Below the pieces are notes generated by a model. It had not been told where the DNA came from. It made no database searches and saw nothing but the letters and a program-made list of their open reading frames with translations. Below are positions 6,407-53,616 of a DNA stretch of 64,000 nt, in pieces. The translations under genes were made by a program, and so were the position numbers. Numbering within the stretch: the stretch's first letter is position 1; each line of letters opens with the position of its first letter. Origin of the DNA: Pristiophorus japonicus (lineage: Eukaryota); assembly GCF_044704955.1 (NCBI RefSeq), contig NC_091992.1, positions 111,848,001-111,912,000 of the forward strand, written 5' to 3'.

Positions 6407-7188
6407 ACTGGCGACGAGGCAAATACGAACCCACGCAAAAGAATGGCAAGCATAGCACGATCGAGTACTGTTGGAATTCTCGAGAGATTCAATGAAGGAG
6501 AGGATTGGGGAGATTTTGTGGCAAACGACCTACCTAAACAAAGACAAGGATACAGAGAAGCGCAGGGCAGTTCTTCTCACCTGTGGCCCCTCGACCCATG
6601 CACTCATCAAGAATCTGCTCTCACCCACTCTTCCTGCAGAAAAGGATTACAAAGAACTGTGTGCTCTAGTTCGGGAACACCTTAAACCCACGGAAGGAAT
6701 CCTCATATCCAGATATCGCTTCTATACGCACGTTCGTCCAGAAGGCCAGGGTGTGGTGGCATTTGTTGCCGACCTGAGATGTGTTGCTAATTTTGGCCTG
6801 CGTTGGAAGAAATGCTGTGTGACTTTTTCGTGATCGGGGTCAACCACGAGGCGATCTTAAGTAAGCTGCTGGCTGCGTAGACGCCAGACCTCAGCAAGGT
6901 CATCACCATCGCCCAGGCTTGCATGTCTACACAGAAAAGCAGATATCGCGACAAAACAGGAACTCTACAGCAAGTACTGTGTACAAAATTACATCGACGG
7001 CCGGCAGAGCTGCACATGGCAGGGTCTACTCGACTGCGCCTGCAAGGCCGGGAGCTGCTCAAAGTTCGCCATCGAGGGCCTACTCGACTGCGTATGCGAG
7101 AACGGGAGCCGCTCAAATCCCACCCTCGAGCGCAAATCCAAGCTCAAAGTGTTGGCGTTGCGGGGGCAATCACCAACCCCATCAGTGC

Positions 7189-7419
7189 TGTCATGTATGC
7201 AAACTCTTTGTATTCACTATGTAACTATGTACGATGTACCACCTGAGGGCAGTGTTGTTGGAGGCCCCAGGGGTTTCCTGCCCTGGTGTGCAGAGGCATA
7301 TAAAAGGCAGACACAGCCATGCTGCTCCTCACTTTGCAGTCGTATTAAATGGACTGAAATCACACAGCTCTTACTCACAGTACTCATGGAGTCATTTGAT
7401 GGTAATTGCAGACATAACA
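7189..7419 (+). repeat. 5' LTR of element B
   Basis: TGTCATG...ATAACA termini, followed by PBS. Confidence 0.93.
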
Positions 7420-10400
7420 ACTGGCGACGAGAATACGGACTTTCACGCGATTATGGCTACCTTTGGCACACTAAAAGACTTCGCAGAGGGTGATGATTGG
7501 GATGCCTTCACGGAAAGTCTCGAGCAATATTTCGTGGCAAACGACCTGGCAGGAGAGACGGACACATTGGCGGAGAAGCGCAAGGCTATACTGCTGACCA
7601 ATTGTGGGTCCGAGGTCTACCGCCTCTTCAGGGACTTGCTGGTACCCACGAAGGCCAAGGATAAGACATACGATGAGCTGACTGAACTAATTCGCGATAC
7701 CATACAGAGGACTTCCTACCAGAATCAGAACTCACTGGCAAGTACTGTAAGGTAAAATCAGGACGATTGCAGGCAGAACTGTTGAACGAATAGGAACTGT
7801 ACAGAGAAGAGCTTACATGCCTGCTGCTGCTAGGCCACCAAGGGGTGTAAATACAAAATCATTAACACAATGCTGGCGTTGCGGGGGTAATCATGGGGCC
7901 CATCAATGTCGATTTAAAGACCATGCGTGCAAAAGCTGCAGAACAAGGGGCCACCTCCAGCGAATGTGCAAACGTACTGCGACTCACCACGTGGCAGTGG
8001 AGTTGGCAGAAGAGTCCCGATCCAGCGTGGATCACAAAGGACAAGCTGGAGAGGCAACTCAGCCCGAGGGAGCAGAGTGCGGGGTGCACACCCTCTCCAC
8101 AAAAAGTCCTCCCAGGATGATAAGTCAAATTAAATGGCGTTCCTGTATCCGTGGAACTGGACACGGGGGCAAGTCAGCCAATTATGAGCCAGAAGGCATT
8201 TGAAAGGCTGTGGGGCAACAACAAAGCACAAAGACCAAAGCTGAGCCCGATTCAGATAAAGCTGCGCACTTACACCAAGGAACTGATACCAGTTATTGGC
8301 AGAGCGAACGTAAAAGTATCCTATGATGGAGAGGCACACGAGCTGCCACTGTGGATTGTACCAGGCAATGGGCCAACGCTGGTTGGCAGAAGCTGGATGG
8401 GGAAGATTCGGTGGAACTGGGAAGACGTCAAAGTATTATCGTCAGTGGACAATGCTTCCTGTGCTCAAGTGCTGAGCAAGTTCCCATCTTTATTTGAACC
8501 AGGCATCGGCAAATTCACAGGCGTCAAAGTACAGATCCACTTGGTCCCCGAGGCACAGCCCGTTTATCACAAGGCTCGAATGGTCCCCTACATGATGAGG
8601 GAGATAGTGGAGATCGAATTGGGCAGACTTCAACAAGAGGGAATCACGTCGCCAATCGTATTCAACGAGTGGGCCAGCCCGATTGTTCCGGTACTAAAGA
8701 GCGATAGCACGGTCAAAATCTGCGGCGACTACAAAGTAATGATCAACTGAGTCTCGTTACAGGACCAGTACCCACAGGGTACCCACAGTGACATTAGCAG
8801 GTGGAAAGGCATTCACCAAGCTGGATCTAACCTCTGCTTACATGACCCAGAAGCTGGTTGAGTCGTTGAAAAAAATTAACATGCATTAACACACACAAAG
8901 GACTGTTCGTGTACAACAGGTGCCCGTTCGGGATTCGCTTGGCTCCAGCCGTATTCCAAAGAAATATGGAGAGCCTGTTGAAATCGGTTCCACGCACCAT
9001 CATATTTCAGGACGACATCCTCATCACTAGCCACGACACCTCGAACACCTGCACAACCTGGAAGAAGTTTTAAGTCGACTAAACAGAGATGGACTCCGGT
9101 TGAAACGATCCAAATGTGTCTTCCTGGCGCCAGAGGTAGAATTCCTGGGGAGGAAAATTGCGGCAGATGGCATCAGACCCATGGACTCGAAGACAGAGGC
9201 CATCAAGTATGCACCCACACCACGACATGTAATGCTCGTTCCTGGGACTCCTCAACTATTTCGGTAACTTTCTTCCAGGGTTGAGCACCTTGCTGGAACC
9301 ATTGCACAAGCTGTTACGCAAGGGAAACAAATGGGCTTGGGGTAAAAATCAAGAGGCTGCCTTTGAGAAGGCCAGAAACCTGCTGTGTTCGAATAAGTTG
9401 CTGGTATTATATGACCCATGTAAACATCTAGTTTTAGCATGTGATGCGTCGTCGTACGATGCCATGTGTGTTTTGCAGCAAGCCAATACAGAGAGCAAGC
9501 TCCAACCGGTTGCATATACGCCCAGAAGCCTATCAAAGGCCGAAAAAGTGTGGTCAAAAAGGAGGCTTTAGCCTGTGTTTATGGTGTAAAAAAGATGCAC
9601 CAATATTTGTTTGGACTCAGGTTCGAGTTAGAGACGGACCACAAGCCCCTAATCTCACTGTTTTCGGAAAGCAAAGGCATAAACACCAATGCTTCACCTC
9701 AGATCCAAAGATGGGCACTAACACCGTCTGCCTACGACTATGTGATCCCCCACAGGCCAGGCACTGCAAACTGCACCGATGTTCTCAGCCGACTACCGCT
9801 GCCCACCACCGAGGTGGAAACGGCACAGCCCGCAGACCTACTACTGGCCATGGATACCTTTGATAGCGAAGGGTCACCCATAACGGCCCGCCAAATTAAG
9901 ACCTGGACCAGCCAGGATCCTCTGCTATCCCTTGTAAAAAGTTGCGACCTCAATGGGAGGTGGTCAGCGGTCCCTAGAGACATGCAAGCCGAGATCAAGC
10001 TATTTCATCGCCGTAAAGACGAAATGTCGATCCATTCAGATTGCCTCTTATGGGGCAACCGTGTTATCTTGCCAAAGAAAGGCAGGGAAACCTTCATATA
10101 TGACCCACCCAGGCATAGTCATGATGAAGGCTATCACCAGGTCCCACGCCTGGTGGCCCGGCATTGACTCGGACCTGGAGTTATGCATGCACCAGTGTAA
10201 CATATACTCACAACTGAGCAATGCTCCTGGGGAGGCTCCACTTAGTCTCTGGTCCTGGCCCTCAAAACCATGGTCCAGGATCCATGTGGATTATGCGCAC
10301 TCCTTTCTGGGAAAGATGTTCCTGGTTGTTGTGGACGCCTCCTCTAAATGGATTGAATGTGCAATAATGGCATCCAGCACGTCCGCAGCCACCATTGAAA

Positions 10401-11222
10401 GCCTCAGGGCCATGTTTGCCACCCATTCTTGTCAGCGACAATGGTCCGTGCTTCACCAGCTCGGAATTCAATGAATTCATGACCCTTAATGGCATCAAGC
10501 ATGTCAGATCTGCCCCGTTCAAGCCCGCATCCAACGGCCAAGCGGAGCGGGCAGTCCAAACCATAAAGCAGAGCTTGAAACATGTCCTTACAAATCCGCC
10601 TGTCCCAGGTACTGCTCAGCCACAGGACACGACCCCACTCACTTACTGGGATTCACCCTGCAGAATTGTTAATGAAACGAGCACTCAAAACCAGGCTCTC
10701 CTTAGTACACCCTGACCTCAGTGATCAGGTGGAAACCAGGCATTATCAGCAAAACATGTACCATGATCGTGTGGCTGTATCACACAACATCACTGTAAAT
10801 GACCCTGTGTTTGTGCTGAATTACGGTCAGGGCCCCAAATGGGTCACCGGCACTGTATTAGCCAAGGAGTGTTTGTTGTCAAACTGCTTAACGGTCAAAT
10901 GTGCAGAAAACATTTGGACCAAACCAAATTACGATTCAAAGATAACCAGGAACCACCAGAAGAGGACCTCATCTTCAGCAACCCACCCACACTCGCCCAA
11001 TTGACAACAGACCTCGCTGCCAATCACGAGGATGATCCCACCATCCCCAACAATCCAACCCAACCAGTCGCGCTGCAAGACAGCAGTGGCCCAACCAACT
11101 CACCCAGGATAGAAGCGATACTCAGACGGTCAACCAGAGAGCCGCAGGACTCCGGTTCGCCTTAACCTATAATCAACTCGCATCAAAGACTTTGGGGGGC
11201 GGGGGGGGGGGGGGGGAAATGA

Positions 11223-11457
11223 TGTCATGTATGCAAATTCTCTGTACAATGCACCACCTGAGGGCGCTGCTGTTGGAGGCCCCAGGGTTTTCCTGCCCTG
11301 GTGTGCAGAGGCATATAAAAGGAAACCAGTCATGCTGCTCCTCACTTTGCAGTCGTATTAAATGGACTGAAGTCACACAGCTCTTACTCACAGTGCAAGG
11401 CCCCATGGAGTCATTCGATGGTAATTGCAGACATAGTAACTAGTAATTGCAGATATA
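11223..11457 (+). repeat. 3' LTR of element B
   Basis: Follows PPT; matches 7189-7419; followed by TSD AGTGC. Confidence 0.92.
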
Positions 11458-14400
11458 AGTGCCGCTTCATACAGTATGTATGCAGAGGGTGTGTGAAGAC
11501 ACGGCATCTTCAGCGGAGCAAGCGAGCTGTGACACACCACGTGGATGATGATCAATCCAGCATGGATCTGGCGATGCAGCCCGACGCATTTAAGAGCTCC
11601 GAGGAGGAAGTGTATAGCGTACATGCGTTCCTAACAAAGAGCCAACCGATAATGATGGAGGTAAAAGTTGGAATTAGACACGGGTGAGAGTCAATCGATA
11701 ATGAGCCAGAGAACTTTCGAAAAGCTGTGGGAGACCAAGGCAGAGAGACCCAAGCTGAGTCCAATAAATGCGAAGTTGCGTACCTATGCCAAAGAGCTCA
11801 TACCAGTGATCGGTCGTGCAGCAGTAAAAGTGTCGTACGAAGGAGCGGTTCATGATCTACCATTAAGGATTATCCCGGGCAACGTCCCATCGTTATTCAG
11901 CAGGAGTTGGCTCGAGAAAATAAAATGGAAATGGTACAATATCAAAGCTTTGTCATCAGCGGATGATGATTTGTGTGCTCAAGTGCTGAGCAAATTTCCC
12001 TCACTGTTTGATTGGGGAATTGGCAGCTTCAAGGGAGCCATGGTGCAGATTCACCTAGGCCCAGGCGCAAGGGCCATCCATCACAAAGCCAGGGCAGTCC
12101 GGCACATGGTGAGAGAAAAGGTCGAGCTCGAATTGGACAGGCTATAACGTGAGGGGGTCATCTCACCGGTTGAATTTAATGAATGGGCCAGTCCAATTGT
12201 TCCGGTGTTAAAGGGCGACGGCACGGTCAGGATTTGTGGACACTACAAGGTCACGATCAACCAAGTTTCGAAACAAGATCAGTACCCGCTACCGAAAGCT
12301 GATGACCTGTTTGCAACGCTAGCCGGGGGAAAATCGTTCACCAAATTGGATCCAACATCGGCCTACATGACCTGGTTGAATCATCAAAGAAACTTACGTA
12401 CATCAACACACACAAAGGACTGTTTATTTACAACAGGTGTCCTTTTGGCATTCGTTCAGCGACAGCCATATTTCAGAGAAACATGGAGAGCCTATTGAAA
12501 TCCGTCCCCAGTACCGTGATATTCCAAGACGACATCCTAGTCACAGGTAGTGACATCGCCGAGCACCTGCACAATCTGGAAGAGGTTCTGCGTCGTCTGG
12601 ACAAAGTGGGACTCAGGCTGAAACATTCAAAGTGCTTTTGCATGGCACCAGAGTTCGAATTCCTTGGACAAAAGATTGCTGCAGACGGAATCAGGCCTAC
12701 AGATACGAAAACAGAGGCCATCAAAAATGCGCCCAGACCCCAGAATGTGACGGAGCTGCATTCGTTCCTGGGTCTTCTCAACTACTTCGGTAACTTCTTA
12801 CCCAAATTGAGCATAGTATTAGAGCCTTTGCACAAACTGCTCAGGAAAGGAGATGACTGGGTGTGGGGTGAACTTCAAGACAGAGCCTTTGTGAAGGCTA
12901 GAAATCTGTTGTGTTCCCACAAGCTACTGATACTGTATGACCCATGCAAGTGTCTAGTTTTGACCTGTGATGCGTCGTCCTATGGGGTCGGCTGCGTACT
13001 CCAGCAAACCAATGAGTCAGGCAAACTACAACCAGTTGCATATGCATCTCGAAGCCTGTCCAAGGCGGAAAGAGCTTACGGCATGGTAGAGAAAGAGGCT
13101 TTAGCATGTCTTTATGGGGTAAATAAAATGCACCAGTGCCTGTTTGGGCTTCACTTCGAGCTGGAAACCGATCACAAGCCGTTTATATCGTTGTTCTCGG
13201 AACATAAAGGTATCAATACCAACGCCTCGTCCCACATCCAGAGGTGGGCGCTGACATTATCTGCCTATGATTATGTCATTCGCCATAGACCAGGCACCGA
13301 CAACTGCGCTGATGCATTGAGCCGGTTACCGTTGTCCACACCGGAGGTGGAAACGCCAATGCCCGCAGAGCTACTTATGGTCATGGATGCCTTTGAGAGT
13401 GAAGGGTCACCTGCCACGGCTCAACAAGTTAAGACCTGGACCAACCAGGATCCGACCCTATCGGTTGTAAAACATTGTGTTCTTAACGGGGACTGGTCGA
13501 CCATCTCCAAGGAAATGGGTGATGAAACCAAACCGTACAGCCGTCGCAAAGATGAGCTTTCCATCTAGTCCGACTGTTTACTGTGGGGTAATTGTGTTGT
13601 AATGCCCAAGAAAGGCAGAGCGAGATTTGTATGGGAGGTTCATAGTACGCATCCCGGTATTGTCATGATGAAGGCCATCGCCAGGTCCCATGTTTGGTGG
13701 TCTGGCATTGACTTGGACTTAGAGTCATGTGTGCATCAGTGCAGCACTTGCATGCAGTTAAGCAATGCCCCAAAGGAAGCTCCGCTCAGTCTGTGGTCAT
13801 GGCCATCCAAACCATGGTCTAGAATGCACATTGACTTTGCGGGCTCCTTCCTCGGTAAAATGTTTTTTGTGGTAGTGGATGTGTACTCCAAATGAATAGA
13901 ATGCGTGATCATGTCATCCGGCACTTCCACTGCCACCATTGAGAACCTGAGAGCCATGTTTGCCACACATGGTCTGCCAGACATCGTTGTCAGCGACAAC
14001 GGATCATGTTTCACGAGCCTGGAGTTTCAAGAGTTCATGAAATGCAACGGCATAAAACACGTAAGGTCAGCCACGTTCAAACCCACGTCCAATGGTCAAG
14101 CGGAGCGGGCAGTTCAAACCATCAAGCAGAGCCTGAAATGCAGTCACTGTTCCTTTCAGGCACGCCTGTCACACATACTGCTCAGTTACAGGACAAGGCC
14201 ACACATGCTCACCGGGGTCCCGCCTGCGGAACTACTGATGGAGAGGCCTCAAAACCAGGCTCTCTCTAGTTCATCCTGACATTAACGATCATGTCGAAAC
14301 CCGATGTCAACACCAGCAGTGGTATCACGACCGCGCCGCCGTGTCACGTGACATATCTGTAAACGACCCAGTGTGTGTACTTAACCATGGTCAAGGGCCC

Positions 14401-14743: not shown

Positions 14744-14954
14744 TGTCATGTATGTACATAAGGTCTGCCCACCACCAGAGGGCACTATTGTTGGAAGTCC
14801 TAGGGTCATAGGTACACTCATGCTGGGCCCAGTTTTGAACCTGAACTTCACCTTTGTATCTTCACTTCTGGAAGCCATTAAAGACTGACCAGGTCTCACT
14901 GGCTCACAGTACGGAGTTCATTACATCACTCTTATGGTGTATGAAATGATACAA
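14744..14954 (+). repeat. 3' LTR of element A (terminal 34 bp including TSD inverted)
   Basis: Follows PPT; matches 6200-6406. Confidence 0.9.
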
Positions 14955-14984
14955 AGAAAATGCATGGACAGGTTACCATTGCTC

Positions 14985-15245
14985 CCAAGTCTCAAGGCGC
15001 TTCACAAGAGTATCATGAGATAAAAATTTGACACTGAGCCACATAAATAGAAATTAGCTTGGTCAAAGAGGTAGGTTTTAAGGAGTTCCAGAGCTTGGGG
15101 CCGAGGCAACAGAAGGCACGGCCACCAATGGTTGAGCGATTATAATCAGGGATGCTCAAGAGGGCAGAATTAGAGGAGCGCAGACATCCCGGGGGGTTGT
15201 GGAACTGGAGGAGATTACAGAGATAGGGAGGGGCGAGGCCATGGA
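14985..15245 (-). mobile_element. L2-type LINE 3' fragment
   Basis: Reverse complement of the repeat at 17294-17615 and 23280-23560; similar to 40935-41395. Confidence 0.65.
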
Positions 15246-15350
15246 AAAGATGTAAAACAGTGCTCAGTACTGCTGTCTGAAATGTCCTTCCATTCTATTC
15301 CGTTCTGGTTCAAGAGACCAGAATGGCTTTGCTGTAATAAAAGCTCTTAC

Positions 15351-15377
15351 TTGGTAAAGCTGGAACATCAGATTACC
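15351..15377 (-). CDS. Candidate 27-nt phase-0 microexon (GNLMFQLYQ) of an unidentified host gene
   Basis: Minus strand tttctcactgtctttag|GGTAATCTGATGTTCCAGCTTTACCAA|gtaaga; only phase 0 is stop-free; lies in non-repeat sequence. Confidence 0.35.
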
Positions 15378-15826
15378 CTAAAGACAGTGAGAAATTCTTT
15401 GTTTGAACATCCAGCTCTCAATGACAGTTAAAATTAATTGATGCCAAAAAAGAAATCATTTTATTGTAATACAATGTCTTGAACAAGTTCTGCTAATTAA
15501 AATTCCTGCAGTATTTCTAAAATACAATTATTGAACTAGGATACTGATCCCCGGAGTAGCATTACAATATGGCTGCACAATGCAGTAATGGAATGTAAAG
15601 CTGGGAGCACTTGCACAGGGCTGTGCTATAAAATAAATCAAATGTGTTACTGGGATAGACTTCTGGAAGAAACATCAAAAATAACTTTACTTATTTGTTT
15701 GCCTTCGAAAGAAAGGAGATGGTAACATCTTCGACTAACCCAGGGACACTGTTCCTCCAAACCTCAATTGTAAAATTCTCATCCTTGTTTTCAAACTCCT
15801 CGATGGCCTCACCCCACCCTATCTCT

Positions 15827-17290
15827 GGGCTCAAAATTGGCCAGGAGTTGCTCCGTTTTTTTTGGAGCAACGTGATTTTTCTGGAGTATCTTAAAAATCC
15901 ACATTTTGCACATTTAATTTGCGCCAGTGTAAGTGAGTTCATAAGATTTTTTTTTCAAAAGGGGCGTTACCAGCCACCTATGCTTGTTTTGGCCATTTAG
16001 GCCACTTTGGACAACTAATAGTTACTCCAAACTAACTTAGGCCAGCATATGTGGCCACTTCTGAACACCCTTGCAGAGAGTTAAGAAATTAGCGCAGGTA
16101 GGTACATCGGAGACCAGCACAACTTAATGACTTGACTAAAGAATGTGAATAGGATCAAACAGCTATACAGGACATCATATGACAAACTTCGCAAAGTTAA
16201 TTTACTATACAACAGAAGCATTCGTGGAAGCTTAAACTACAAAAATAAAAGAAGGGTAGCTAATGTAAACAACTATTTGTTTGCAATGATTATACTGGGC
16301 CAAAATTGAGCCTATATTATCTAAATAAAGTCTACTTCAATAAATAAGATATTCTCTCAGTGTTCCTCTGTCACTTATGTTCTTCTTTCACAATAGCACC
16401 AGGTGAATAGGCTTGACAAATAGTCACTACTATTCACAAGAGACAAAATATATTGATATAATTTTTTCAAAATATCCAAAAGTCCAGGAAAATGACAAGC
16501 CTTTCAGAAAGTTCAAAAATAGTTACAGTGCATAAAATGTCAAACCTGAGGTCGATCGCACCGGGAGGCCACTCGGCTAGGGCTAGGGGCGGGCATCAGG
16601 TCCCACACACACAGCGGCTGCAGCACGCTGTAAGCAGATTTCTTCTCTCCTCCTCTCTTCTTCCACATAACGCCACCGATGACCAGAGCAATCAGGGCGA
16701 CGGCAGCAATCACAATTCCAACAATCAAACCGAGATTTGTTCCCTTTGGAGATCCTGGAGTCACTCGGAACGTCCCATCCCAGTCTCAGTTCTTCACTCC
16801 TGTATTGGCACTCTGCTCATACTGACAGTAACAGGTGGCTCCATCCTCGGGTTCGATCTCAGCCCATCTCGTCAGCTGGTAGGTTCCGTCGTGGTTGGGC
16901 AGAATGCCACTGGATTCCGTGTCCATGATCGGCTCGCGATTTCTTACGAGGGTGACTTCGATATCACGAGAGTAAAAGCCCGTGTCGAAGCAGGAGAGTT
17001 GGGTCGGTTTAATATTTGGCCACTCAGCCTGGGATGGGGGCGGGACACACACAGAGATGCTGGGGGCGAGGAGCTACTGTGCATGCGCGCACACGCCAAT
17101 GCACATGTGCAGACGTCCCGGCACTATTTTCAGTGTGGGACACTGGCTCTGCCCCCGGCTCGACTGGCCACGCTGTGCGAAGACCCGGGAGAGGCCGGAC
17201 AGTGGCCAAAGTCAGGACGTCTTTTTTCGTCGAAAAGCTGCGCAACTCGGGTGAGTGTGCCAAAAATCGTCATGGGCCAATTTTGAGCCC
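15827..17290. mobile_element. Non-autonomous PIF/Harbinger-type TIR element carrying captured cargo (Pack-TIR-like)
   Basis: Perfect 16-bp TIR GGGCTCAAAATTGGCC (15827-15842) and GGCCAATTTTGAGCCC (17275-17290); 3-bp TSD TCT; subterminal similarity to 19063-19844; TIR related to 55290-57999. Confidence 0.9.
16618..17017 (-). pseudogene. Intron-less MHC class I heavy-chain fragment (alpha3 Ig-C1, connecting peptide, TM, cytoplasmic start)
   Basis: One frame: NIKPTQLSCFDTGFYSRDIEVTLVRN...SSGILPNHDGTYQLTRW...CYCQYEQSANTGVKN*DWDGTFRVTPGSPKGTNLGLIVGIVIAAVALIALVIGGVMWKKRGGEKKSAYSVLQ. Class I alpha3 motifs, a TM segment, a basic stop-transfer and a cytoplasmic Tyr. Single TGA at 16788-16786. Confidence 0.88.
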
Positions 17291-18988
17291 TCTGTAACTT
17301 CCTCCAGCCCGCTCCTCCAATTCTGGCCTCTTGCACATCCCCTATATTAATCACTCCACCATTGGCAGCTGTCTTTTCAGCTGCCTAGGCCCTAAATTCT
17401 GGAGTTCCCTCCCTACATCGCTCTCTCTCTCTCTCTACCTCTACCTCTATCTCTCTTTCCTCCTTTAAGACGCTCCTTAAAACCTGCCTCTTTTGGTCAT
17501 CTGCCCCAATATCTCCTTGTGGCTTGGGGTCAAATTTTGTTTCATAATGCTCCTGTGAAGCACCTTGGGACATTTTACTACATTAAAGACGCTATATATG
17601 CAAGTTGATGTTGTTAATATCCCGTATTTATTTTTAACAAAATGCAAAATATGACCTGGAGAGATTGATGGTTTTTGAAAAATAATCCAAGAAGATAAAT
17701 TCTAAATCCTAATTCCATTTTGAGTCTCCACATTTAACAGGATCCTGGGACAGCTTGACAATTAACAAAAAGACAAACAGTTAATAAAACATAACCTGAT
17801 GTTTTATTTTGAGTTAGATTAAGCAGCGTGATCCGAGCAATGATATTTTTCTGTAAAAATGCACTCATTTTTCAAAATGTCAGGCTTCTGTAAACAAGCA
17901 GCATGTATATTTTCTCTCACTTCCTCTCACATAAGCCATGCCTTATGGCTTTTTTTCAAATCAATTAGTTGCGCATAACAGATATAAATTAATTAGAAAA
18001 AGTCTTCATTTGGATCTTCAATACTGCAGTTTATTCATTTATTTAGGCCTGTCATTTGTGTAATTGGAGTATATGAAGACTTTTTGAAAGCCCATTATTG
18101 CTACATTATCAGACCCATCAATGGAACACAAAAGTCACTGGCTGTCCATAGTCTTGCCTGCCTGAACTTGGTGTGTATGGTATTTTGTCATCTAGCAGTT
18201 TGCACTCAGGTGATCATGTGGGAGGAAAAGCTGTTGTGCAGCTTCCTTCAACATCTCTTGTCTCCATGTCTAACCTCAGCTGGCATCAGTGGCCCAAATT
18301 CTCTAACTCGCTGTTAGATCTCTTAATTTCCAATGAAATACGAACTCCGATTGTAATTTTAATGTAACTTTATTCTGGCAGCAGCAACAAGCTCTTGGCT
18401 TTAAGCCAGGCCTTTGTCCTTCTGAGACCACATGGCCAAAATGGCTGTACTTATACCTGGTTCAATTTACAGAAAAGAACACGCCTTCTTTGACCTTATT
18501 GGCTCAATTGATAGTCTGTTAACCTTTTAATTGGCTCACTACCAAAGGTCCTAAAATGTCAAGTTGATTGATGACTTAATGCAATGTGGTCTGTGTTTTT
18601 TCAAAACTGCAGCCAGGCTGCAGAGCTTGAATTCTCTATCGCCCATCAAAAGAGAAGCCTTGGTAGTCAGGGGAGAAAGGTGAAAGGAAAACAAATTGAA
18701 TTTGATTATTCATGAACCAAAATTAGAAAAAAAAACACATTTAATTTGACCCTGATTTGAGAACCCAACCAAATCATAGCATCCCCCAGTATTCTCCTGA
18801 AAGCCCTAACCAATGCTGGGTTACAATTCCACAGGGGCTGGAAACCCTCCATCAGCTTACCCCATTCTTCATACATGAGCCGCAGATAGCGAATGGGCAG
18901 AGTCACCATATCCAAGCCTGGTCATGTCTTTGCCCGACATGCGCACACTTTCTCAGACAGGTCACTGGGCAGCATTTCAGATGGAGCC

Positions 18989-19062
18989 TGTAATGAATAC
19001 ACCTGTGAGTATGCTCACAGGTTTTTGTGAATGCCAATCACGTGATGTTCACAAGACTCAAT
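18989..19062 (+). repeat. 5' fragment of an LTR of the same family as the split LTR at 28968-28921 plus 21656-22498
   Basis: TGTAATG start, CACCTGTGAGTATGCTCACAGG palindrome, then CACGTGATGTTCACAAGACTCAAT; truncated by the adjacent MITE. Confidence 0.8.
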
Positions 19063-19844
19063 GGGCTCAAATTTCCCCAACACCTTATTCTGGCGCCCGC
19101 ACTAAAGGTGAAAGGGGGCATTCCCAGACACTTACGCCAGTTTTGGCCATTTATGCCACTTTGGACAGCAAAAACTTACTCCAAATCCACTTAGGTCAGC
19201 GTATGCGGCCAGCTGTGAAAAAGCAGCGCACATTCAGCAGACATTAGGGCAGGGATAGGGGAGGGAAGGGAACTGGAGAGGACCTCAACAACCAAGCAGC
19301 AAACATTAAGGAAAAGCTCAAACCAATAAAATACAATTAATAAAAGAAGCAAATCCTACCCTAGCTTTAAAGTCTGTCTGGAAAGGCTGCGGACCACCTG
19401 TGTGTGAGGCCATTTGGCCTGGGATAGGGGAGGCAAGATGCACTGGAGAAGTGCGAGCTCGTGGACCGGAAAAGTTGCAGCTGCTGGATCTGCGTGTTTC
19501 ATCACAGGGGCAGGGGGGGGGTGGCGGTGAGCCCGCCGAGCGACCGGAGATGCGATGCTCTTTAAAAATGGTATAGAGTGCCAAGTTTTCTCTCTCTCCT
19601 GCGCATGCTCACACGTCGGGGCTGGTACCACTGCGTATGCGCGAAGGTGCCGGCACTGTATTCGGCGACGGCGTTTGGGTCCGCCCCCCCCCCCCCACTT
19701 CACCATCAACACCACGCCAGGACTCCGGGGACTGTACACAGCGGCCAGGATGGGGCGAGTTTTTCCCGGCACTGTTTCCAGCGCGCAAAGTTGGCGCGCT
19801 GGAGGCCAGTGCGCCAACAAAACTGCTTGGGGAAAATCTAGCCC
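19063..19844. mobile_element. Non-autonomous Harbinger-type element (sister of 15827-17290, without MHC cargo)
   Basis: Imperfect TIR GGGCTCAAATTTCCCC and GGGGAAAATCTAGCCC; 19115-19215 aligns with 15961-16063; no TSD. Confidence 0.8.
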
Positions 19845-20764
19845 GTAGTGTGCACCCTAGCCTGGGGTACGGAGGACAATTGCTGAACAATTACTGCTGC
19901 CCCAGGTGATATCGGCTAACTCGGCACAGGCCCAGAATCAAGCCTACTGTACCATTATGATGGCTCAGAACTGCACTGGCATTTACCAACCATGCCATGG
20001 GGGAAAAGTTCCCCAACCTGGTTTTTAAAGTATGTGGTTTTGTATATAGTCTTCGTGACCCCAGTCGCTACATTCAACTATACACTAAAGAAAACTTCTG
20101 ACACCGTGCAGGATTCCCCCTGCATTGCCTGAGTTTATTGCAAGTGTTACTAATCTTAACCGTCATGAAGGGAAGCATTAACTCTCAGCTGTCCTAATCT
20201 AATTGGCATGTCCCATTTTTGAAGGCCAACTTTAGCCTTGTCTTATTCATCATACTTTAGATCAAGCTTCCCAGAGTTTTAAATACCTTCCAAGCCTCAG
20301 ACTGTCAGCCGCAAGATGGCCGTTTTAAGAATCAATTCACGCCGTTTTAATATTCCAAGTTGTGACACATGGCAACGTGCCACTGAATTTAGTCGTTTGT
20401 CCCAGATTTTCAGGTTGAGAGGTACCAACTAGATACCCGGCATCTCCTCGTAGAGAAGGGAGGCAGAAAAGAATGCCGCTTCAGATTGCTCTCATACATC
20501 TGTTTGTGGGCAGCTCATGTGTGAGCACCATTAGCAGAGCCTGTCAGCAACGTGCCCAGCCATCCTGTAAAGCCATCACTTACTGTACAGCAATATGTTG
20601 TTAAATAAATAGACAAAGTATTTTTACTATGCGATAAGTCACATGCCCACACAGCCATAAGACATGTACAAACATGCCCAGACATAAAATATTGCAATAA
20701 AGCTAGAAAAAGTATTGCTCAGTCACTACCAGCAATAATAACAGCTAAACCTGGCTGATCCACT

Positions 20765-21655
20765 TCAGTTCTGCGCGGAGGGGTCTCCTGTACGAGCTGC
20801 TCCTGCACACTCTCCACCTTGCCATCCTCGTCTGCCGTTCGGACACGCCATGGTGCACTATCTTGCCGTCCGGAGGAGGTGGGGGTCCCCGATGGAGTGC
20901 ACTCTACGCGGGAGTCCTCCCTCTATTTATCGGGGACTTGGCCTGGAGGGTGGTGCACGGAGCAGTCCTGTGCAATAAATTTTTAAGTCGGTTCACGGGC
21001 TCCCAGGCCGCCTGCAATTTCTGCGGTCTGGAGGAGTCCGTGTTCCATGTTTTTATGGAGTGTGCGAGGTTGCAGCCCCTATTCCACTATTTAAAGGGGC
21101 TGCTCCTCAAATTTTGTCCCACACTCCTGATCTTTGGGCACCCTGTGCGGAGGGGAGCGGGTAGGTCCGAGGGTCTCCTCGTAGGACTGCTCCTGGGCAC
21201 GGCCAAGGGGGCCATCAGCCGGTCCAGGCAGCAGGCGGTCGAGGAGGTCGTTCAGCCCGACTGCCTGCCTCTCTTCCGCACGTACATCCGGGCCAGGGTG
21301 TTCCTGGAGATGGAGCACGCGGTGTCCACCGGTACGCTCATGGCCTTCCGAGAGAGGTGGGCGCCGGAGGGACTGGAGTGCATCATCACCCCCGGCAACC
21401 AAATTTTTATTTGATTTTATATGTTTTAAAGTTTAATCTGTTTACTGTGCTGGGTTTTAGTGTCCCCCTCCCCTTTTAGCCAGGGGGCACTTGCATAATT
21501 TGTGGTTTTAGTGCCCAAAAAAACCCACAAACACCCCCCCCCAAAAAAAAGGGCACTTGAAAACTGTTTGGAGTGTCCACCACCACCTTCATCCCCCCCC
21601 GCCCTTAATCAGGGGGCACTTGATTTAATATTTGTTTTGTTCTCAACAAAAGAGT
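20765..21655 (+). mobile_element. Tx1-clade LINE 3' part (ORF2 C-terminal zinc finger and 3' UTR)
   Basis: WRVVHGAVLCN...CNFCGLEESVFHVFMECARL; 3' UTR with repeated GGGGCACTTG. Confidence 0.88.
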
Positions 21656-22498
21656 TGTAGAGCTGTTGTATTGTGAGTGCCAGTCACGTGATGTTCACAA
21701 GACTCAATAAAACCCCAGTCAGTTAGGTCTAGGTCATCCACGATGAGGTATGCAGTTGTGAGCCTCGTGGATGAACTGGTAATGTGTAGTGTGATTGTTA
21801 AACGTCTGTTAATAAACCAACTAGTTCTTAATAGCAATGTGGTGTTATGAAATCTTAAGCAAGGTCATCATAGGCAGTCCCTCGAAATCGAGGAAGATTT
21901 GCTTCCACTCTAAAAGTGAGTTCTTGGGTGACTGAATAGTCCAATATGGGAATTATAGTCTCTGTCACAGGTGGGACAGACAGTCGTTGAAGGAAAGGGT
22001 GGGTGGAGAGTCTGGTTTGCCACACGCTCCTTCTGCTGCCTGCGCTTGTTTTCTGCATGCTCTCGGTGACGAGACTCGAAGTACTCAGCGCCCTCCCGGA
22101 TGCTCTTCCTCCATTTAGGGTGGTCTTTGGCCAGGGACTCCCAGATGTCGGTGGGGATGTTGCATTTTATCAAGGAGGCTTTGAAGCGTTTCCTCTGCCT
22201 ACCTGGGGCTCGCTTGCCGTGTAGCAGTTCGAAGTAGAGCGCTTGCTTTGGGAGTCCTGTGTCAGGCATGCGAACAATGTGGCTCGCCCAATGGAGCTGG
22301 TCGAGTGTGGTCAGTGCTTCGATGCTGGGGATGTTGGCCTGATCGAGAACACTTACGTTGGTGCATCTGTCCTCCCAGGGGATTTGCAGGATCTTGCGGA
22401 GACATCATTGGTGGTATTTCTCCAGCGATTTGAGGTGTCTACTGTACATGGTCCATGCCTCTGAGCCATACAAGAATCCATGAAGCAAATACATTACA
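21656..22498 (+). repeat. 3' part of solo LTR (interrupted by RTE 21865-22470)
   Basis: Continues the sequence seen at 18989-19062; ends TACATTACA followed by TSD TTTTC. Confidence 0.82.
21865..22470 (-). mobile_element. RTE-clade LINE, 5'-truncated
   Basis: MPDTGLPKQALYFELLHGKR...CPTCDR C-terminus and (ATG)n tail. Confidence 0.9.
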
Positions 22499-23279
22499 TT
22501 TTCAAATGATGCTGCTCCTGGCATGTTCTTCTATAGTTTCCATTGAATCAGGATTAATCTCCTGGAATGGAGAGCTTCCTCTTTTTGAAGACAACATAAT
22601 ACTGGCAACATTTGCTTAGCTTGAGATTGTAGTAAAATGCTATCTTTGAAAACCAAGACCCTCTTGATTGGAGCACTGTTGGGCTGGCCTCATGAAATGA
22701 TGTACTTTGAATTGGGGAAAATGTTTGTTGAAATTGCGGGGGGTGGGGGGAGGCTAAACAACCTTCGCTGGGGTTCTGTTCAATCGCAAAATGTTGGATT
22801 TACTCTTCGCTGGCAAAGTGGCCAATAATGTTAGTGACTCTTGCAGCTGGCGGTCTTTGGCAAACAGACAGAAAGGGGGAACAGACAGAAAATCCACCTA
22901 TAATGTTTGACATGATAATTCACACAAGTGACCTGATGGTGTTTCAACACAATTTGCGTCATTGTTTGTGGGTGTTTACATACTCAAATCACCACTACTT
23001 CATGAAGGTGGTGGCCCTTTTTAGAAATAATTTCCATGATTACAGTAAACCTCCCACCTTTTTGTCTCCTCCAATGCCAATATACTTGCACAGTCAAATG
23101 TGTTGCAACTTTTGAAGTAATAGCTAACCATTACTTCCTCAACCCCCCTATGGTGAAAACCTAGAATCACTATGTTTTTCCATGAGGTGCAGCAGCATCA
23201 TCCCTCATCAGCTTCTCTTCAGGATACATCTCCTGTGTGGACAGAGGCCCGAAGTTTATGTTAAGATTAAGTTTATAAG

Positions 23280-23561
23280 ATATCTGCACTACTCTAATTC
23301 TGCCTTCTTGAGCATCCCTGATTATAATCGCTCAATCATCGGTGGCCGTGCCTTCAGCTGCCTGGGCCCCAAGCTCTGGAACTCCCTGCCTAAACCTCTC
23401 GACCTCTCTTTCCTCCTTTAAGACGCTCCTTTTGGTCATCTGCCCTAATTTCTTCTTTTGTGGCTTGGTGTCAAATTTTTGTCTTCTAACACTCCTGTGA
23501 AGTGCCTTGGGGTGTTTTACTACGTTAAAGGCGCTAAAGAAATACAAGTTGCAGTTGTTGT
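23280..23561 (+). mobile_element. L2-type LINE 3' fragment
   Basis: GGRAFSCLGPKLWNSLP and (TTG)n tail. Confidence 0.7.
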
Positions 23562-24107
23562 TGGCTCTCATCTTGTTGATCCTACTGTCCTCTCTTGTGA
23601 AATCAGTTCAACACTTAATGTTAGTAACATTTAAGTTAACTACTCGCTGTACCATCAGGAGGCTGAGCAAGATCATTCTGGTTTAATGTCGCTGATGTCA
23701 GCGATTTTGTTTTGCAATAAATTGGGGGGAGGTGGGGGGATGGCACATACTGTCCATGAAAGAAGAGCAACAAATACTTGCTTTCGTGTAGCATCTTATT
23801 GCAACTTTGAAATGTCTCAAAGCACTGATGCAAATAATTAGTTGAGCAGCGGATGTTATTTAGGATTCACTGCTGTTACGGGGGCGGGGGTGAGGGTGGG
23901 GATATGATCATTGCGCCTGGCCATCTTTTATTTTATTGTGATCAACTTAAACTATAATAATTGCATCTTATTAACTAATATTTATCCAGTGTTTTGGCTA
24001 ATCCATTACACAATTTTGCTCATATAATATCAGGGTAATACGCTTCTGAATGTATAGAATTGCTGAAGAGCAAATTGCAACTATTAGTATTTAATTTCTG
24101 CAGTGGA

Positions 24108-32199: not shown

Positions 32200-35100
32200 A
32201 TAAGAACATAAGAAATAGGAGCAGGAGTAGGCCGTACAGCCCCTTGAGCCTGCTCCGCCATTTAATAAGATCATGGCTGATCTGATCATGGACTCCGCTC
32301 CACTTCCCCGCCCGCTCCCCATAACCCCTTATCGTTTACGAAACTGTCTATTTCTGTCTTAAATTTATTTTATGTCCCAGCTTGAACAGCTCTCTGAGGC
32401 AGCGAATTCCACAGATTCACAACCCTCAGAGAAGAAATTTCTCCTCATCTCAGTTCTAAATAGGCGGCCCCTATTCTAAGATCATGCCCTCTAGTTCTAG
32501 TCTCCCCCATCAGTGGAAACATCCTCTCTGCATCCACCTTGTCAAGCCCACTCATAATCTTATATGTTTCGAGAAGATCACCTCTCATTCTTCTGAATTC
32601 CAATGATTGGAGGTCCAACCTACTCAATCTTTCCTCATAAGTCATCCCCAGAATCAACCTAGTGAACCTTCTCTGAACTGCCTCCAAAGCAAGCATATCC
32701 TTTTGTAAATATGGAAACCAAAACTGCACACAGTATTCCAGGTGTGGCCTCACCAATACCTGTATAACTGTAGCAAGACTTCCCTGCTTTTATACTCCAT
32801 CCCCTGTGCAATAAAGGCCAAGATTCCATTGGCCTTCCTGATCACTTGCTGTACCTGCATATTATCCTTCTGTGTTTCATGCACAAGTACCCCCAGGTCC
32901 CGCCTTACTGCAGCATTTTGCAATCTTTCTCCATTTAAATAATAACTTGCTCTTTGATTGTTTTTCTGCCAAAGTGCATGACCTCACACTTTCCAACATT
33001 ATATTCCATCCGCCAAATTTTTGCCCACTCACTTAGCCTGTCTCTGTCCTTTTGCAGCTTTTTTTGTGTACTCCTCACACATTGCTTTTCCTCCCATCTT
33101 TGGATCGTCAGCAAACTTGGCTACGTTACACTCAGTCCCTTCTTCCAAGTCGTTAATATAGATTGTAAATAGCACTGATTCCTGTGGCACCCCACTCGTT
33201 ACTGGTTGCCAACCAGTGAATGAACCATTTATCCTGACTCTCTGTTCCCTGTTAGCTAGCCAATCCCCCATCCATGCTAATATATTACCCCCAACCCCGT
33301 GAACTTTTAAAAACATAGAAACATAGAAAATAGGTGCAGGAGTAGGGCATTCGGCCCTTCAAACCTGCACCGCCATTCAATGAATTCATGGCTGAACATG
33401 CAACTTCAGGACCCTATTCCTGCTTTCTCACTATACCCCTTGATCCCCCGAGTAGTAAGGACTACATCTAACTCCTTTTTGAATATATTTAGTGAATTGG
33501 CCTCACCAACTTCCTGTGGTAGAGAATTCCACAGGTTCACCACTCTCTGGCTGAAGAATTTTCTCCTCATCTCGGTCCTAAATGGCTTATCCCTTATCCT
33601 TAGACTGTGACCCCTGGTTCTGGACTTCCCCAACATTGGGAACATTCTTAATGCATCTAACCTGTCTAAACCCCTGAGAATTTTAAACGTTTCAATGCGA
33701 TCCCCTCTCATTCTTCTGAACTCCAGTGAATACAAGCCCAGTTGATCCAGTCTTTCTTGATATGTCAGTCCCGCCATCCCGGGAATCAGTCTGGTGAACC
33801 TTCACTGCACTCCCTCAATAGCAAGAATGACCTTCTTCAAGTTAGGAGACCAAAACTGTACGCAATACTCCAGGTGTGGCCTCACCAAGGCCCTGTACAA
33901 CTGTAGCAACACCTCCCTGCCTCTGTACTCAAATCCCCTCGCTATGAAGGCCAACGTGCCATTTGTTTTCTTAACCGCCTGCTGTACCTGCAAGCCAACC
34001 TTCAATGACTGATGTACCATGACACCCAGGTCTCGTTGCACCTCCCCTTTTCCTAATCTGTCACCATTCAGATAATAGTCTGTCTCTCTGTTTCTACCAC
34101 CAAAGTGGATAACCTCACATTTATCCACATTAAACTTCATCTGCCATGCATTTGCCCACTCACCTAACCTATCCAAGTCACTCTGCAGCCTCATAGCATC
34201 CTCCTCGCAGCTCATACTGCCACCCAACTTAGTGTCATCCGCAAATTTGGAGATACTACATTTAATCCCCTCATCTAAATCATTAATGTACAATGTAAAC
34301 AGCTGGGGCCCCAGCACAGAACCTTGCGGTACCCCACTAGTCATTGCCTGCCATTCTGAAAAGTACCCATTTACTCCTACTCTTTGCTTCCTGTCTGCCA
34401 ACCAGTTCTCAATACACATCAGCACACTACCCCCAATCCCATGTGCTTTAACTTTGCACATTAATCTCTTGTGTGGGACCTTGTCGAAAGCCTTCTGAAA
34501 GTCCAAATACACCACATCAACTGGTTCTCCCTTGTCCACTCTACTGGAAACATCCTCAAAAAATTCCAGAAGATTTGTCAAGCATGATTTCCCTTTCACA
34601 AATCTATGCTGACTTGGACCCATCATGTCCCCTCTTTTCAAATGCGCTGCTATGACATCCTTAATAATTGATTCCATCATTTTACCCACTACCGATGTCA
34701 GGCTGACCGGTCTATAATTCTGTTTTCTCTCTCCCTCCTTTTTTTAAAAAGTGGGGTTACATTGGATCAGTTCCTATGGAGTGAAGGGTAGCCAGAGTCT
34801 ATGGAATGTTGGAAAATGACTGTCAATGCATCCGTTATTTCCAAGGCCACCTCCTTAAGTACTCTGGGATGCAGACCATCAGGCCCTGGGAATTTATCGG
34901 CCTTCAATCCCATCAATTTCCCCAACACAATTTCCCGACTAATAAGGATTTCCCTCAGTTCCTCCTTCTTACTAGACCCTCTGACCCCTTTTATATCCGG
35001 AAGGTTGTTTGTGTCCTCCTTAGTGAATACCGAACCAAAGTACTTGTTCAATTGGTCTGCCATTTCTTTGTTCCCCGTTATGACTTCCCCTGATTCTGAC

Positions 35101-47243: not shown

Positions 47244-50200
47244 AAAGGGGGTAAGGGGAGGAGAAAGGGGGTGGGGGGGGGCGGAAGAAGGAAGGGGGGT
47301 GGGGGGGGGAAGAAGGAAGGAGGGTGGGGGGGGGAAGGAGGAAGGGGGTGGGGGGGGAAGGAGGAAGGGGGTGGGGGGGAAGGAGGAAGGGGGTGGGGGG
47401 GTGGAAGGAGGAAGGGGGTGGGGGGGTAAGGAGGAAGGGGGTGGGGGGGTAAGGAAGAAGGGGGTGGGGGGGTAAGGAAGAAGGGGGTTGGGGGGTAAGG
47501 AGGAAGGGGGTGGGGGGGGGGGGGTAAGGAGGAAGGGGGGGGGGGGTAAGGAGGAAGGGGGGGGGTAAGGAGGAAGGGGGTGGGGGGGGTAAGGAGGAAG
47601 GGGGTGGGGGGGGTAAGGAGGAAGGGGGTGGGGGGGTAAGGAGGAAGGGGGTGGGGGGGTAAGGAGGAAGGGGGTGGGGGGGGGTAAGGAGGAAGGGGGT
47701 GGGGGGGTAAGGAAGAAGGGGGTGGGGGGGGTAAGGAAGAAGGGGGTGGGGGGGGTAAGGAAGAAGGGGGTGGGGGGGGTAAGGAGGAAGGGGGTGGGGG
47801 GGGGGGGTAAGGAGGAAGGGGGGGGTAAGGAGGAAGGGGGTGGGGGGGTAAGGAGGAAGGGGTGGGGGGGGTAAGGAGGAAGGGGTGGGGGGGGTAAGGA
47901 GGAAGGGGGTGGGGGGTAAGGAGGAAGGGGGTGGGGGGGGTAAGGAGGAAGGGGGTGGGGGGGGTAAGGAGGAAGGGGGTGGGGGGGTAAGGAGGAAGGG
48001 GGTGGGGGGGGTAAGGAGGAAGGGGGTGGGGGGGTAAGGAGGAAGGGGGTGGGGGGGGTAAGGAGGAAGGGGGTGGGGGGGGTAAGGAGGAAGGGGGTGG
48101 GGGGGGTAAGGAGGAAGGGGGTGGGGGGGGTAAGGAGGAAGGGGGTGGGGGGGTAAGGAGGAAGGGGGTGGGGGGGGTAAGGAGGAAGGGGGTGGGGGGG
48201 GGTAAGGAGGAAGGGGGTGGGGGGGGTAGGAGGAAGGGGGTGGGGGGGTAAGGTGGAAGGGGGTGGGGGGGTAAGGAGGAAGGGGGTGGGGGGGTAAGGA
48301 GGAAGGGGGTGGGGGGGTAAGGAGGAAGGGGGTGGGGGGGGTAAGGAGGAGGGGTGGGGGGGTAAGGAGGAAGGGGGTGGGGGGGTAAGGAGGAAGGGGG
48401 TGGGGGGGTAAGGAGGAAGGGGGTGGGGGGGTAAGGAGGAAGGGGGTGGGGGGGTAAGGAGGAAGGGGGTGGGGGGGTAAGGAGCAAGGGGGTGGGGGGG
48501 TAAGGAGCAAGGGGGTGGGGGGGTAAGGAGGAAGGGGGTGGGGGGGGAAGGAGGAAGGGGGTGGGGGGGGAAGGAGGAAGGGGGTGGGGGGGGAAGGAGG
48601 AAGGGGGTGGGGGGGGAAGGAGGAAGGGGGTGGGGGGGGAAGGAGGAAGGGGGTGGGGGGGGAAGGAGGAAGGGGGTGGGGGGGGAAGGAGGAAGGGGGT
48701 GGGGGGGTGGAAGGAGGAAGGGGGTGGGGGGGTAAGGAGGAAGGGGGTGGGGGGGTAAGGAGGAAGGGGGTGGGGGGGGTAAGGAAGAAGGGGGTTGGGG
48801 GGTAAGGAGGAAGGGGGTGGGGGGGTAAGGAGGAAGGGGGGGGGGGTAAGGAGGAAGGGGGGGGGGGTAAGGAGGAAGAGGGTGGGGGGGTAAGGAGGAA
48901 GGGGGTGGGGGGGTAAGGAGGAAGGGGGTGGGGGGGTAAGGAGGAAGGGGGTGGGGGGGTAAGGAGGAAGGGGGTGGGGGGGGGGGGGTAAGGAGGAAGG
49001 GGGTGGGGGGGGGGTAAGGAGGAAGGGGGTGGGGGGGGTAAGGAGGAAGGGGGTGGGGGGGGGTAAGGAGGAAGGGGGTGGGGGGGGTAAGGAAGAAGGG
49101 GGTGGGGGGGGTAAGGAAGAAGGGGTGTGGGGGTAAGGAAGAAGGGGGTGGGGGGGTAAGGAGGAAGGGGGTGGGGGGGGTAAGGAGGAAGGGGGGGGTA
49201 AGGAGGAAGGGTGTGGGGGGGGTAAGGAGGAAGGGGTGGGGGGGGTAAGGAGGAAGGGGGTGGGGGGGGTAAGGAGGAAGGGGGTGGGGGGGGTAAGGAG
49301 GAAGGGGGTGGGGGGGGGTAAGGAGGAAGGGGTGGGGGGGGTAAGGAGGAAGGGGGTGGGGGGGGTAAGGAGGAAGGGGGTAGGGGGGGTAAGGAGGAAG
49401 GGGGTGGGGGGGTAAGGAGGAAGGGGGTGGGGGGGGTAAGGAGGAAGGGGGTGGGGGGGGTAAGGAGGAAGGGAGTGGGGGGGGTAAGGAGGAAGGGGGT
49501 GGGGGGGGTAAGGAGGAAGGGGGGTGGGGGGGGGGGGTAAGGAGGAAGGGGGTGGGGGGGTAAGGAGGAAGGGGGTGGGGGGGTAAGGAGGAAGGGGGTG
49601 GGGGGGTAAGGAGGAAGGGGGTGGGGGGGTAAGGAGGAAGGGGGTGGGGGGGTAAGGAGGAAGGGGTGGGGGGTAAGGAGGAAGGGGGTGGGGGGTAAGG
49701 AGGAAGGGCTGGGGGGTAAGGAGGAAGGGGGGTGGGGGGGTAAGGAGGAAGGGGGTGGGGGGGGTAAGGAGGAAGGGGGTGGGGGGGCCTGGGGGNNNNN
49801 NNNNNNNNNNNNNNNNNNNNNNNNNNNNNNNNNNNNNNNNNNNNNNNNNNNNNNNNNNNNNNNNNNNNNNNNNNNNNNNNNNNNNNNNNNNNNNNNNNNN
49901 NNNNNNNNNNNNNNNNNNNNNNNNNNNNNNNNNNNNNNNNNNNNNNNNNNNNNNNNNNNNNNNNNNNNNNNNNNNNNNNNNNNNNNNNNNNNNNNGGGGG
50001 GGTAAGGAGGAAGGGGGTGGGGGGGGGTAAGGAGGAAGGGGGTGGGGGGGGGGGGGGTAAGGAGGAAGGGGGTGGGGGGGTAAGGAGGAAGGGGGTGGGG
50101 GGGTAAGGAGGAAGGGGGTGGGGGGGGTAAGGAGGAAGGGGGTGGGGGGGTAAGGAGGAAGGGGGTGGGGGGGTAAGGAGGAAGGGGGTGGGGGGGTAAG

Positions 50201-53200: not shown

Positions 53201-53616
53201 GGGGAAGGAAGGGGGTGGGGGGGAAAGAAGGAAGGGGGTGGGGGGGGGAAGAAGGAAGGGGGTGGGGGGAAGAAGGAAGGGGGTGGGGGGGAAGAAGGAA
53301 GGGGGTGGGGGGGGGGGAAGAAGGAAGGGGGTGGGGGGGGGAAGAAGGAAGGGGGTGGGGGGGGGGAAGAAGGAAGGGGGTGGGGGGGGGGAAGAAGGAA
53401 GGGGGTGGGGGGGGGGAAGAAGGAAGGGGGTGGGGGGGGGGGAAGAAGGAAGGGGGTGGGGGGGAAGAAGGAAGGGGGTGGGGGGGGGGGAAGAAGGAAG
53501 GGGGTGGGGGGGGGGAAGAAGGAAGGGGGTGGGGGGGGAAGAAGGAAGGGGGTGGGGGGGAAGAAGGAAGGGGGCTGGGGGGGGGAAGAAGGATGGGGGT
53601 GGGGGGGGGAAGGAAG
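47244..53616 (+). repeat. G-rich ~23-bp satellite (TAAGGAGGAAGGGGGTGGGGGGG, changing to GAAGAAGGAAGGGGGTGGGGGGG)
   Basis: Direct inspection; hundreds of units with variable G-run length. Confidence 0.97.
49796..49995. other. Assembly gap (200 N)
   Basis: N run. Confidence 1.

Follow-up and report, generated by a model that had tools for sequence, protein, structure and literature searches.

Element A, a 1.46-kb transposon bounded by terminal inverted repeats (TIRs), carries an intron-free 391-nt fragment of an MHC class I gene, set between two direct copies (R1 and R2) of a G-rich motif, M. This R1–MHC–R2 arrangement is probably the footprint of a single capture by template-switch repair in a Pack-type TIR transposon and not a pair of recombination sites, a reading to which we give a probability of roughly 0.55. 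A spliced immune-gene fragment with a clean 45–54-nt self-duplication at both junctions is an unusually legible footprint of capture. The record of gene capture by cut-and-paste transposons is rich for plants and thin for animals and, to our knowledge, nearly all animal captures are single-copy hAT or Mariner events. Within the window (the whole 64-kb stretch of DNA analysed), we recognise one capture event; its cargo is dead, and the other supposed cargo is ordinary transposon sequence. The features of A are as follows (strand in brackets).

15824..15826 (.): left copy of the target site duplication (TSD), TCT; both flanks aligned to another copy of the interrupted repeat
15827-17290: element A, non-autonomous TIR element, 1.46 kb, with perfect 16-nt TIRs and a 3-nt TSD
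15827..15842 (+): left TIR, GGGCTCAAAATTGGCC; 16/16 inverted match to 17275-17290
15957..16065 (+): left-arm block with repeated GGCCA units; 80% identical to 19111-19219 of the related element B
16084..16116 (+): M0, degenerate motif copy adjoining the left arm; positional equivalent of copy B_M1 in element B
16117..16566 (+): AT-rich internal segment, not cargo of this locus but consensus of the family or subfamily; from depth, consensus variants and an other-organism contig
16567..16620 (+): R1, left copy of the duplicated motif M; from degenerate pattern, local alignment and G4Hunter
16621..16626 (.): 6-nt CAGCAC, past the R1 alignment and ahead of the first base that resembles MHC; may stem from the element, from filler or from the parent gene
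16627..17017 (-): MHC class I cargo, 391 nt, intron-free, with partial alpha3, connecting peptide, transmembrane (TM) segment and start of the cytoplasmic tail; from Pfam, PDB and protein homology
16786..16788 (-): in-frame TGA at the alpha3/connecting-peptide boundary; ORF 16786..17052 ends there and the frame runs on into the TM ORF
17018..17062 (+): R2, right copy of motif M; starts at most 2 nt from the MHC limit
17063..17274 (+): GC-rich right arm, loosely alike to B 19628-19781
17275..17290 (-): right TIR; 16/16 inverted match to the left TIR
17291..17293 (.): right TSD copy, TCT; same flank alignment as the left copy

Carrier element A and its target site

The target of A is a SINE-like repeat, of which a second copy lies inverted at 15023-15259. 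The two copies are thus in opposite orientation about 530 nt apart (15023-15259 versus 15786-15826 plus 17291-17538). On the uninterrupted copy (15150-15275, turned), the flanks of A share 3 nt and no more, and the empty site, when rebuilt, reached its best score with 3 nt removed; the TSD is therefore TCT. This SINE-like repeat is the most abundant sequence of the mapped stretch, with a depth of up to 3.8 million, and other copies of it skip all of A, as seen in contig joints from 15792/15795 to 17311/17315 among the joints listed.

A is best read as a non-autonomous DNA transposon with TIRs that belongs to a shark MITE family of very high abundance. Its Harbinger-like placement is tentative: the TSD of 3 nt has the PIF/Harbinger length but, as TCT, not the typical TWA sequence. 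No transposase was found among the nine ORFs scanned in the 64-kb window (226-686 aa), five of which match reverse transcriptase (RT), RNase H or endonuclease families, the other four matching nothing. Retroelement ORFs with LTR-type RT/RNase H, RVT_1 and endonuclease-RT domains were noted at 9466-10167, 12483-13568, 33802-34689 and 58171-59427; the window is repeat-rich intergenic DNA in which no host gene was recognised. A search of 14900-20000 against Rfam returned nothing, and the right-arm ORF 17016-17294 had no homologous protein in a collection that is without shark repeat ORFs of such lengths.

GGCCA-type units recur across both arms. The right arms of A (17080-17256) and B (19599-19781) have a GC-rich block in common. 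In A this region includes GCATGCGC-type palindromes (17080-17091 and, as TGCACATGTGCA, 17100-17111) and CCAAT (17096-17100), and CCGGCACTRTTT is found in both right arms, at 17117-17133, 19648-19665 and 19764-19781. A GGTGAGT donor-like site (17250-17256) is also present in A. The shared block looks like a putative promoter plus first exon.

The MHC class I cargo

Translated from the minus strand, 17052-16789 gives an Ig C1-set domain (Pfam, E 2.5e-9) that best resembles the alpha3 domain of MHC class I/MR1 in the PDB (E 1e-14). Beyond the TGA at 16786-16788 the same frame continues through a connecting peptide and a transmembrane segment into a KKRGGEKKSAYS tail. In a set of 1.84 billion representative proteins, class I-like proteins of the horn shark Heterodontus francisci come closest, with 68-70% identity, and the TM-cytoplasmic piece is 58% identical up to ...SAYS. 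In the 17052-16789 frame, residue 14 (IKPTQL...) is the first with protein homology. The horn shark relatives open alpha3 with VAPQVFLSADKASAA, which the cargo lacks, being without the first ~12 alpha3 codons. The MHC ORF 16789-17052 itself had no match in the collection without shark repeat ORFs of such lengths. In MHC class I genes alpha3 and TM are on separate exons; since the two are contiguous here, the cargo is intron-free. With one in-frame stop, it is a pseudogene without function of its own.

The sequence-only reading had placed the MHC piece between R1 and R2, and contigs from sequencing runs bear this out: the MHC-like contigs of four runs align only within 16627 to 17015-17018. The gaps left are at most 6 nt to R1, which ends at 16620 or at the latest at 16626, and at most 2 nt to R2, which begins at 17018. 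Over this interval, and only there, MHC-like DNA contigs and RNA-like contigs, which represent genomic and expressed MHC-I paralogues, are 82-91% identical to the cargo. A 663-nt RNA-like contig carries, beyond 16627, 342 nt unlike the window. A DNA contig of 1,246 nt is alike to the window over 16759-17018 alone and departs from it on both sides; its edge at 16759 would fit the alpha3 exon meeting an intron in an intron-bearing gene. One single-copy DNA contig (16677-16899) crosses the alpha3 exon limit uninterrupted, so other intron-free copies exist in the genome.

Three other origins for parts of this arrangement were considered and rejected. R2 is not an alpha3 exon start or splice acceptor, given that the relatives start with VAPQVFLSADKASAA, that homology begins at residue 14 and that the MHC contigs stop at 17015-17018. 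The AT-rich segment is not an MHC 3'UTR: the RNA-like contigs part from the window at 16627, and in DNA the segment has a high copy number. A LINE-type retrocopy was set aside on a cargo truncated at its 3' end and with no tail.

Two further observations concern the MHC sequences. The alpha3-coding end at 16774-16790 (sense ACTGAGACTGGGATGGG) is an inverted match of 17 nt (15/17) to the core of R2 at 17022-17038 (ACTCAGCCTGGGATGGG); with E 0.26 and a position away from any junction, it may be due to chance. In the horn shark, XP_067865201.1, named CD1d2-like, has a lysine-rich non-MHC N-terminus (...NVKGNPKAFFRHLNT) followed immediately by MHC-I alpha3-TM-cytoplasmic sequence, the latter from the first residues of the alpha3 exon onwards. 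We suspect that this N-terminus is of retroelement origin, and alpha3-TM-tail fragments may be mobilised or chimeric in another shark too.

Motif copies and copy number in elements A and B

The motif strings quoted in the sequence-only reading are all present in the window: R1 (16567-16614), R2 (17018-17054), GGAGACCA (16109-16116) and the two copies of the sister element (19406-19430 and 19238-19261). A degenerate version of the motif, designed once the copies had been seen, matches three times in the 64-kb window (16567, 17018 and 19408), for 0.04 matches expected. The local alignment of R1 (16567-16620) with R2 (17018-17062) scored 35, for 15.3 +/- 2.4 in shuffles; 37 of the 43 aligned columns are identical, and there are one 11-nt and one 2-nt indel. 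Both begin with GAGTGGCC-type sequence and both contain GGCCACTC, GGGGCGGG and CACACACAG, which are absent from the copies of B. R1 and R2 are more alike to each other than either is to the copies of B or to M0. This mutual closeness, together with the sequences that B lacks, points to a duplication within A's own lineage. M0 aligns weakly and collinearly with 19239-19263 (score 22; shuffles 14.1 +/- 2.4). The motif copies number only two to three, are ~80-86% alike and leave spacers of 131, 391-397 and 450 nt.

In A, 25-nt windows with G4Hunter of at least 1.2 occur only at R1 and R2, with scores near the threshold. The motif as a hairpin or attC-like site was rejected, as it folds no better than shuffles (z +1.47, +1.17 and +0.87; -0.77 for B_M2). 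Nearly all G4-prone sequence of the window belongs to a G-rich minisatellite of 6.3 kb (47273-53614), made of about 273 copies of a 23-nt unit, GGGTGGGGGGGGAAGGAGGAAGG, with 90% matches, which spans the 48001-50000 bin containing a 200-N assembly gap.

Element B, further along the window, belongs to a related family:

19063..19846 (+): element B; a 109-nt left-arm block 80% identical to A and loosely similar right-arm blocks
19238..19279 (+): B_M1, motif copy with a canonical G-quadruplex motif; from local alignment and G4 scan
19280..19407 (+): inter-motif spacer of B, not significantly alike to A's spacer; steep fall in copy number
19408..19449 (+): B_M2, motif copy; from degenerate pattern and local alignment

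As the sequence-only reading had it, B has two motif copies with different DNA in between. They are spaced 131 nt apart, and no similarity of the enclosed DNA to the spacer of A was detected. The two copies (19242-19279 and 19411-19449) align with a score of 41, for 15.7 +/- 2.8 in shuffles. The score of the A/B spacer alignment was reached by 26 of 300 shuffles, and there is one collinear 23-nt block (16233-16254 and 19327-19349, E 0.04). Copy number was followed as summed depth in X1, a DNA run of the same species in which single-copy sequence has a depth of ~14-20. In B it falls from 59,587 at 19206 to 1,577 at 19341 and 56 at 19393, so that a low-copy middle (56-1,577) lies between high-copy arms. 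No ORF in this middle is coding-like. In one other-organism contig the match to B sets in at 19418, within the motif, and the preceding DNA is unrelated. A TSD was searched for at the boundaries of B and none was found. The left flank of B (19025-19062) recurs 2.6 kb downstream at 21671-21708 with 95% identity, and this repeat is not resumed on the right side of B, which may be related to an inversion noted earlier at 20759-24107.

Along A, the depth in X1 is 160,000 in the left arm (bin 15926-16096), with 320,000 at 16014. In the AT-rich segment it is 89,777 at 16120, 63,776 at 16224 and 5,600-28,000 over 16313-16539, the whole segment ranging from 5,600 to 130,000, that is, hundreds to thousands of copy-equivalents. 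The MHC part stands at 400-1,200 (400-511 at 16668 and 16985), a depth that sums MHC-bearing elements and MHC genes, the two not being separable by depth. In the right arm depth is again about 7,000-14,000 (7,400-14,200 over 17125-17158). The values left of R1 (8,200-10,600 at 16523-16539) are similar to those right of R2, and beside both repeats the depth is 20-30 times that of the cargo. Similar high depth in the flanks with low depth in the cargo is expected if most copies join the flanks without MHC; we infer that most copies of the family join the AT-rich segment to the right arm in this way. The corresponding joint (~16566/16620 to 17018/17063) is not among the 15 joints listed of 502. 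Relative to the left arm, the MHC part is 358 times shallower in X1 and 24 times deeper in run X6, and by these opposite ratios X6, and less clearly X5, are RNA-like runs with expressed MHC-I paralogues.

These data also bear on the AT-rich stretch 16117-16566, which had been taken for a cargo. That view is refuted: the stretch is high-copy in X1, has no host match, and its junction with M0 is found in a contig of the differently labelled organism X8, which covers 16087-16219 with 3 differences in 133 nt (98%). At AT-rich positions numerous contigs share the same alternative base, which we read as the family consensus seen against one decayed copy. This inter-motif segment is thus family consensus, a finding that the sequence-only reading had itself named as counting against its proposal. 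Deletion joints found in other copies, among the joints listed, include 16254>16438 and 16298>16552. The string TGGGCCAAAATTGAGCC at 16296-16312 is a 15/17 match to the right end of A (17273-17289); the AT-rich part thus exists in deleted forms, and it may contain the remnant of an old end. A right-arm contig of another organism, whose alignment sets in at 17054 without passing through R2, tells against the capture reading.

Capture scenarios and known systems

Element A has two marks of a Pack-type transposon: a host-derived segment missing from the family consensus (MHC-I, depth 400-1,200 against 7,000-320,000), and TIRs and a TSD that bound one element (16/16; TCT, by comparison with the uninterrupted repeat). 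Under the capture reading, the ancestral A would have consisted of the left arm, M0, the AT-rich family segment, a G-rich M and the right arm. Repair by copying would then have followed, in a single ancestor, a break or a stalled fork located in M or beside it. The growing strand would exit the element just after M and continue for 391 nt on MHC class I sequence free of introns (cDNA, mRNA or an MHC-I retrogene), from the middle of alpha3 into the cytoplasmic tail, before it re-entered the element ~45-55 nt upstream of the point of exit. M would thereby be copied twice, and the outcome, M (R1), MHC, M (R2), would resemble a long target duplication. The template switching is deduced from anatomy, and with it the order of events; a role of M as a site of polymerase or fork stalling is plausible, the G4 scores being modest. 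The divergence of R1 and R2, ~14% plus two indels, corresponds to about twice a neutral branch, with the cargo ~10% from its nearest listed expressed paralogue; the counts are small, and this fits a duplication made at the capture. Given M0 in A and both M1 and M2 in B, R1 and R2 could also be older than the capture.

This last point is the core of one alternative, in which at least two M units are normal in the family, perhaps as transposase-binding GGCCA units with a G-rich tail, and MHC sequence replaced or split the DNA between them; the repeats would then be uninformative on capture. The two M copies of B, 131 nt apart, M0 at the position equivalent to B_M1 and the GGCCA-type units throughout both arms all suit it. 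It has, however, to treat the flush fit of MHC with a repeat unit on both sides as a coincidence, unless the units were adjacent, and to accommodate an R1 and R2 closer to each other than to the copies of B or to M0, and we hold it to be unlikely. Chance resemblance of two G-rich stretches is very improbable. The motif is short and G-rich and the pattern was built after the copies were seen, but the alignment lies ~8 sd above shuffles and all three pattern matches, where 0.04 were expected, fall in the two related elements; on the alignment score and the pattern count we reject chance for practical purposes.

The sequence-only reading went further and proposed that the family acquires foreign sequence repeatedly at a fixed motif that is regenerated each time. 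The part that stands is that one acquisition, of MHC, duplicated the motif; repetition is not seen in the window. A non-enzymatic version would make M a preferred exit and re-entry site for template switching, through a G-rich stall or a reverse-transcriptase jump, at which different members of the family gain different, often spliced, host fragments, adding one M copy per capture, so that M-spacer arrays grow. It can point to three M-flanked intervals with unlike contents in two elements, to the low-copy middle of B between high-copy arms and to the other-organism copy that breaks inside M at 19418. Against it, the larger spacer of A is family consensus, the window holds only two elements and no second cargo with a host match, and survivorship would also cluster boundaries at the inner edges of the arms, as only captures that spare the arms amplify. 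We regard such a hotspot as doubtful, and would give no better odds to its fullest form, in which M is a recurrent switch point onto spliced RNA or cDNA and the family a slot that gains intron-free host gene pieces and spreads them by cut-and-paste. If M does bracket other cargoes genome-wide, that would point to a defined fragile or template-jump site driving recurrent capture; and if recurrent capture at M is true, it would amount to an RNA-fed, motif-anchored transduplication, a form not described in vertebrates.

A single template-switch capture thus remains our preferred reading, and it can be set beside systems already known. The likeness to integron cassettes or CRISPR repeat-spacer arrays is confined to the picture of repeat, unlike DNA, repeat, and the analogy drawn with them in the sequence-only reading fails in every feature that could be tested: repeats that are unstructured, imperfect (80-86% alike) and only two to three in number, irregular spacers, one of them consensus, and no recombinase. 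A has neither integrase nor Cas genes, and no site-specific recombinase was found in the 1.46-kb element or among the nine ORFs scanned in the window. In place of heterogeneous foreign cassettes, A has, in one of its two intervals, family sequence of high copy number that another organism also carries.

With LINE-mediated processed pseudogenes the cargo shares the state of an intron-less, decayed gene copy. It differs from them in being truncated at both ends and in stopping, after ...SAYS, while still coding for the cytoplasmic tail; it has neither a 3'UTR nor an A-tail and lies inside a TIR element and not between LINE-type target duplications. A resembles the products of FoSTeS/MMBIR and of SDSA with template switching in that its insert is a copy of sequence from another place, is flanked by recipient sequence in short direct duplication and has a G-rich, possibly fork-stalling neighbour; for A, such a mechanism is deduced from anatomy alone.

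The nearest relatives are the Pack-TIRs and Pack-MULEs, here the animal Pack-TIRs (Tan et al. 2021, PMC8277862) and the Tpn1 CACTA elements of morning glory (PMC5105172). In common with A, they are non-autonomous TIR elements with conserved ends, an internal host fragment of a few hundred bases and internal breakpoints. That TIR elements gain sequence by template switching has already been described for animals (PMC8277862), where the models are gap-filling and fork-stalling template switching with microhomology; a breakpoint shows microhomology in 67.6% of the cases, and the breakpoints tend towards internal positions that are presumably fragile. There are 370 published animal cases, of which 87% are hAT or Tc/Mariner and only 4 multicopy. 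We found no description of an element duplication bracketing the cargo in the portions of PMC8277862 and PMC5105172 drawn on here. Compared with the animal Pack-TIRs, A is a Harbinger-like shark MITE whose cargo is spliced and bracketed by a 45-54-nt duplication of the element itself.
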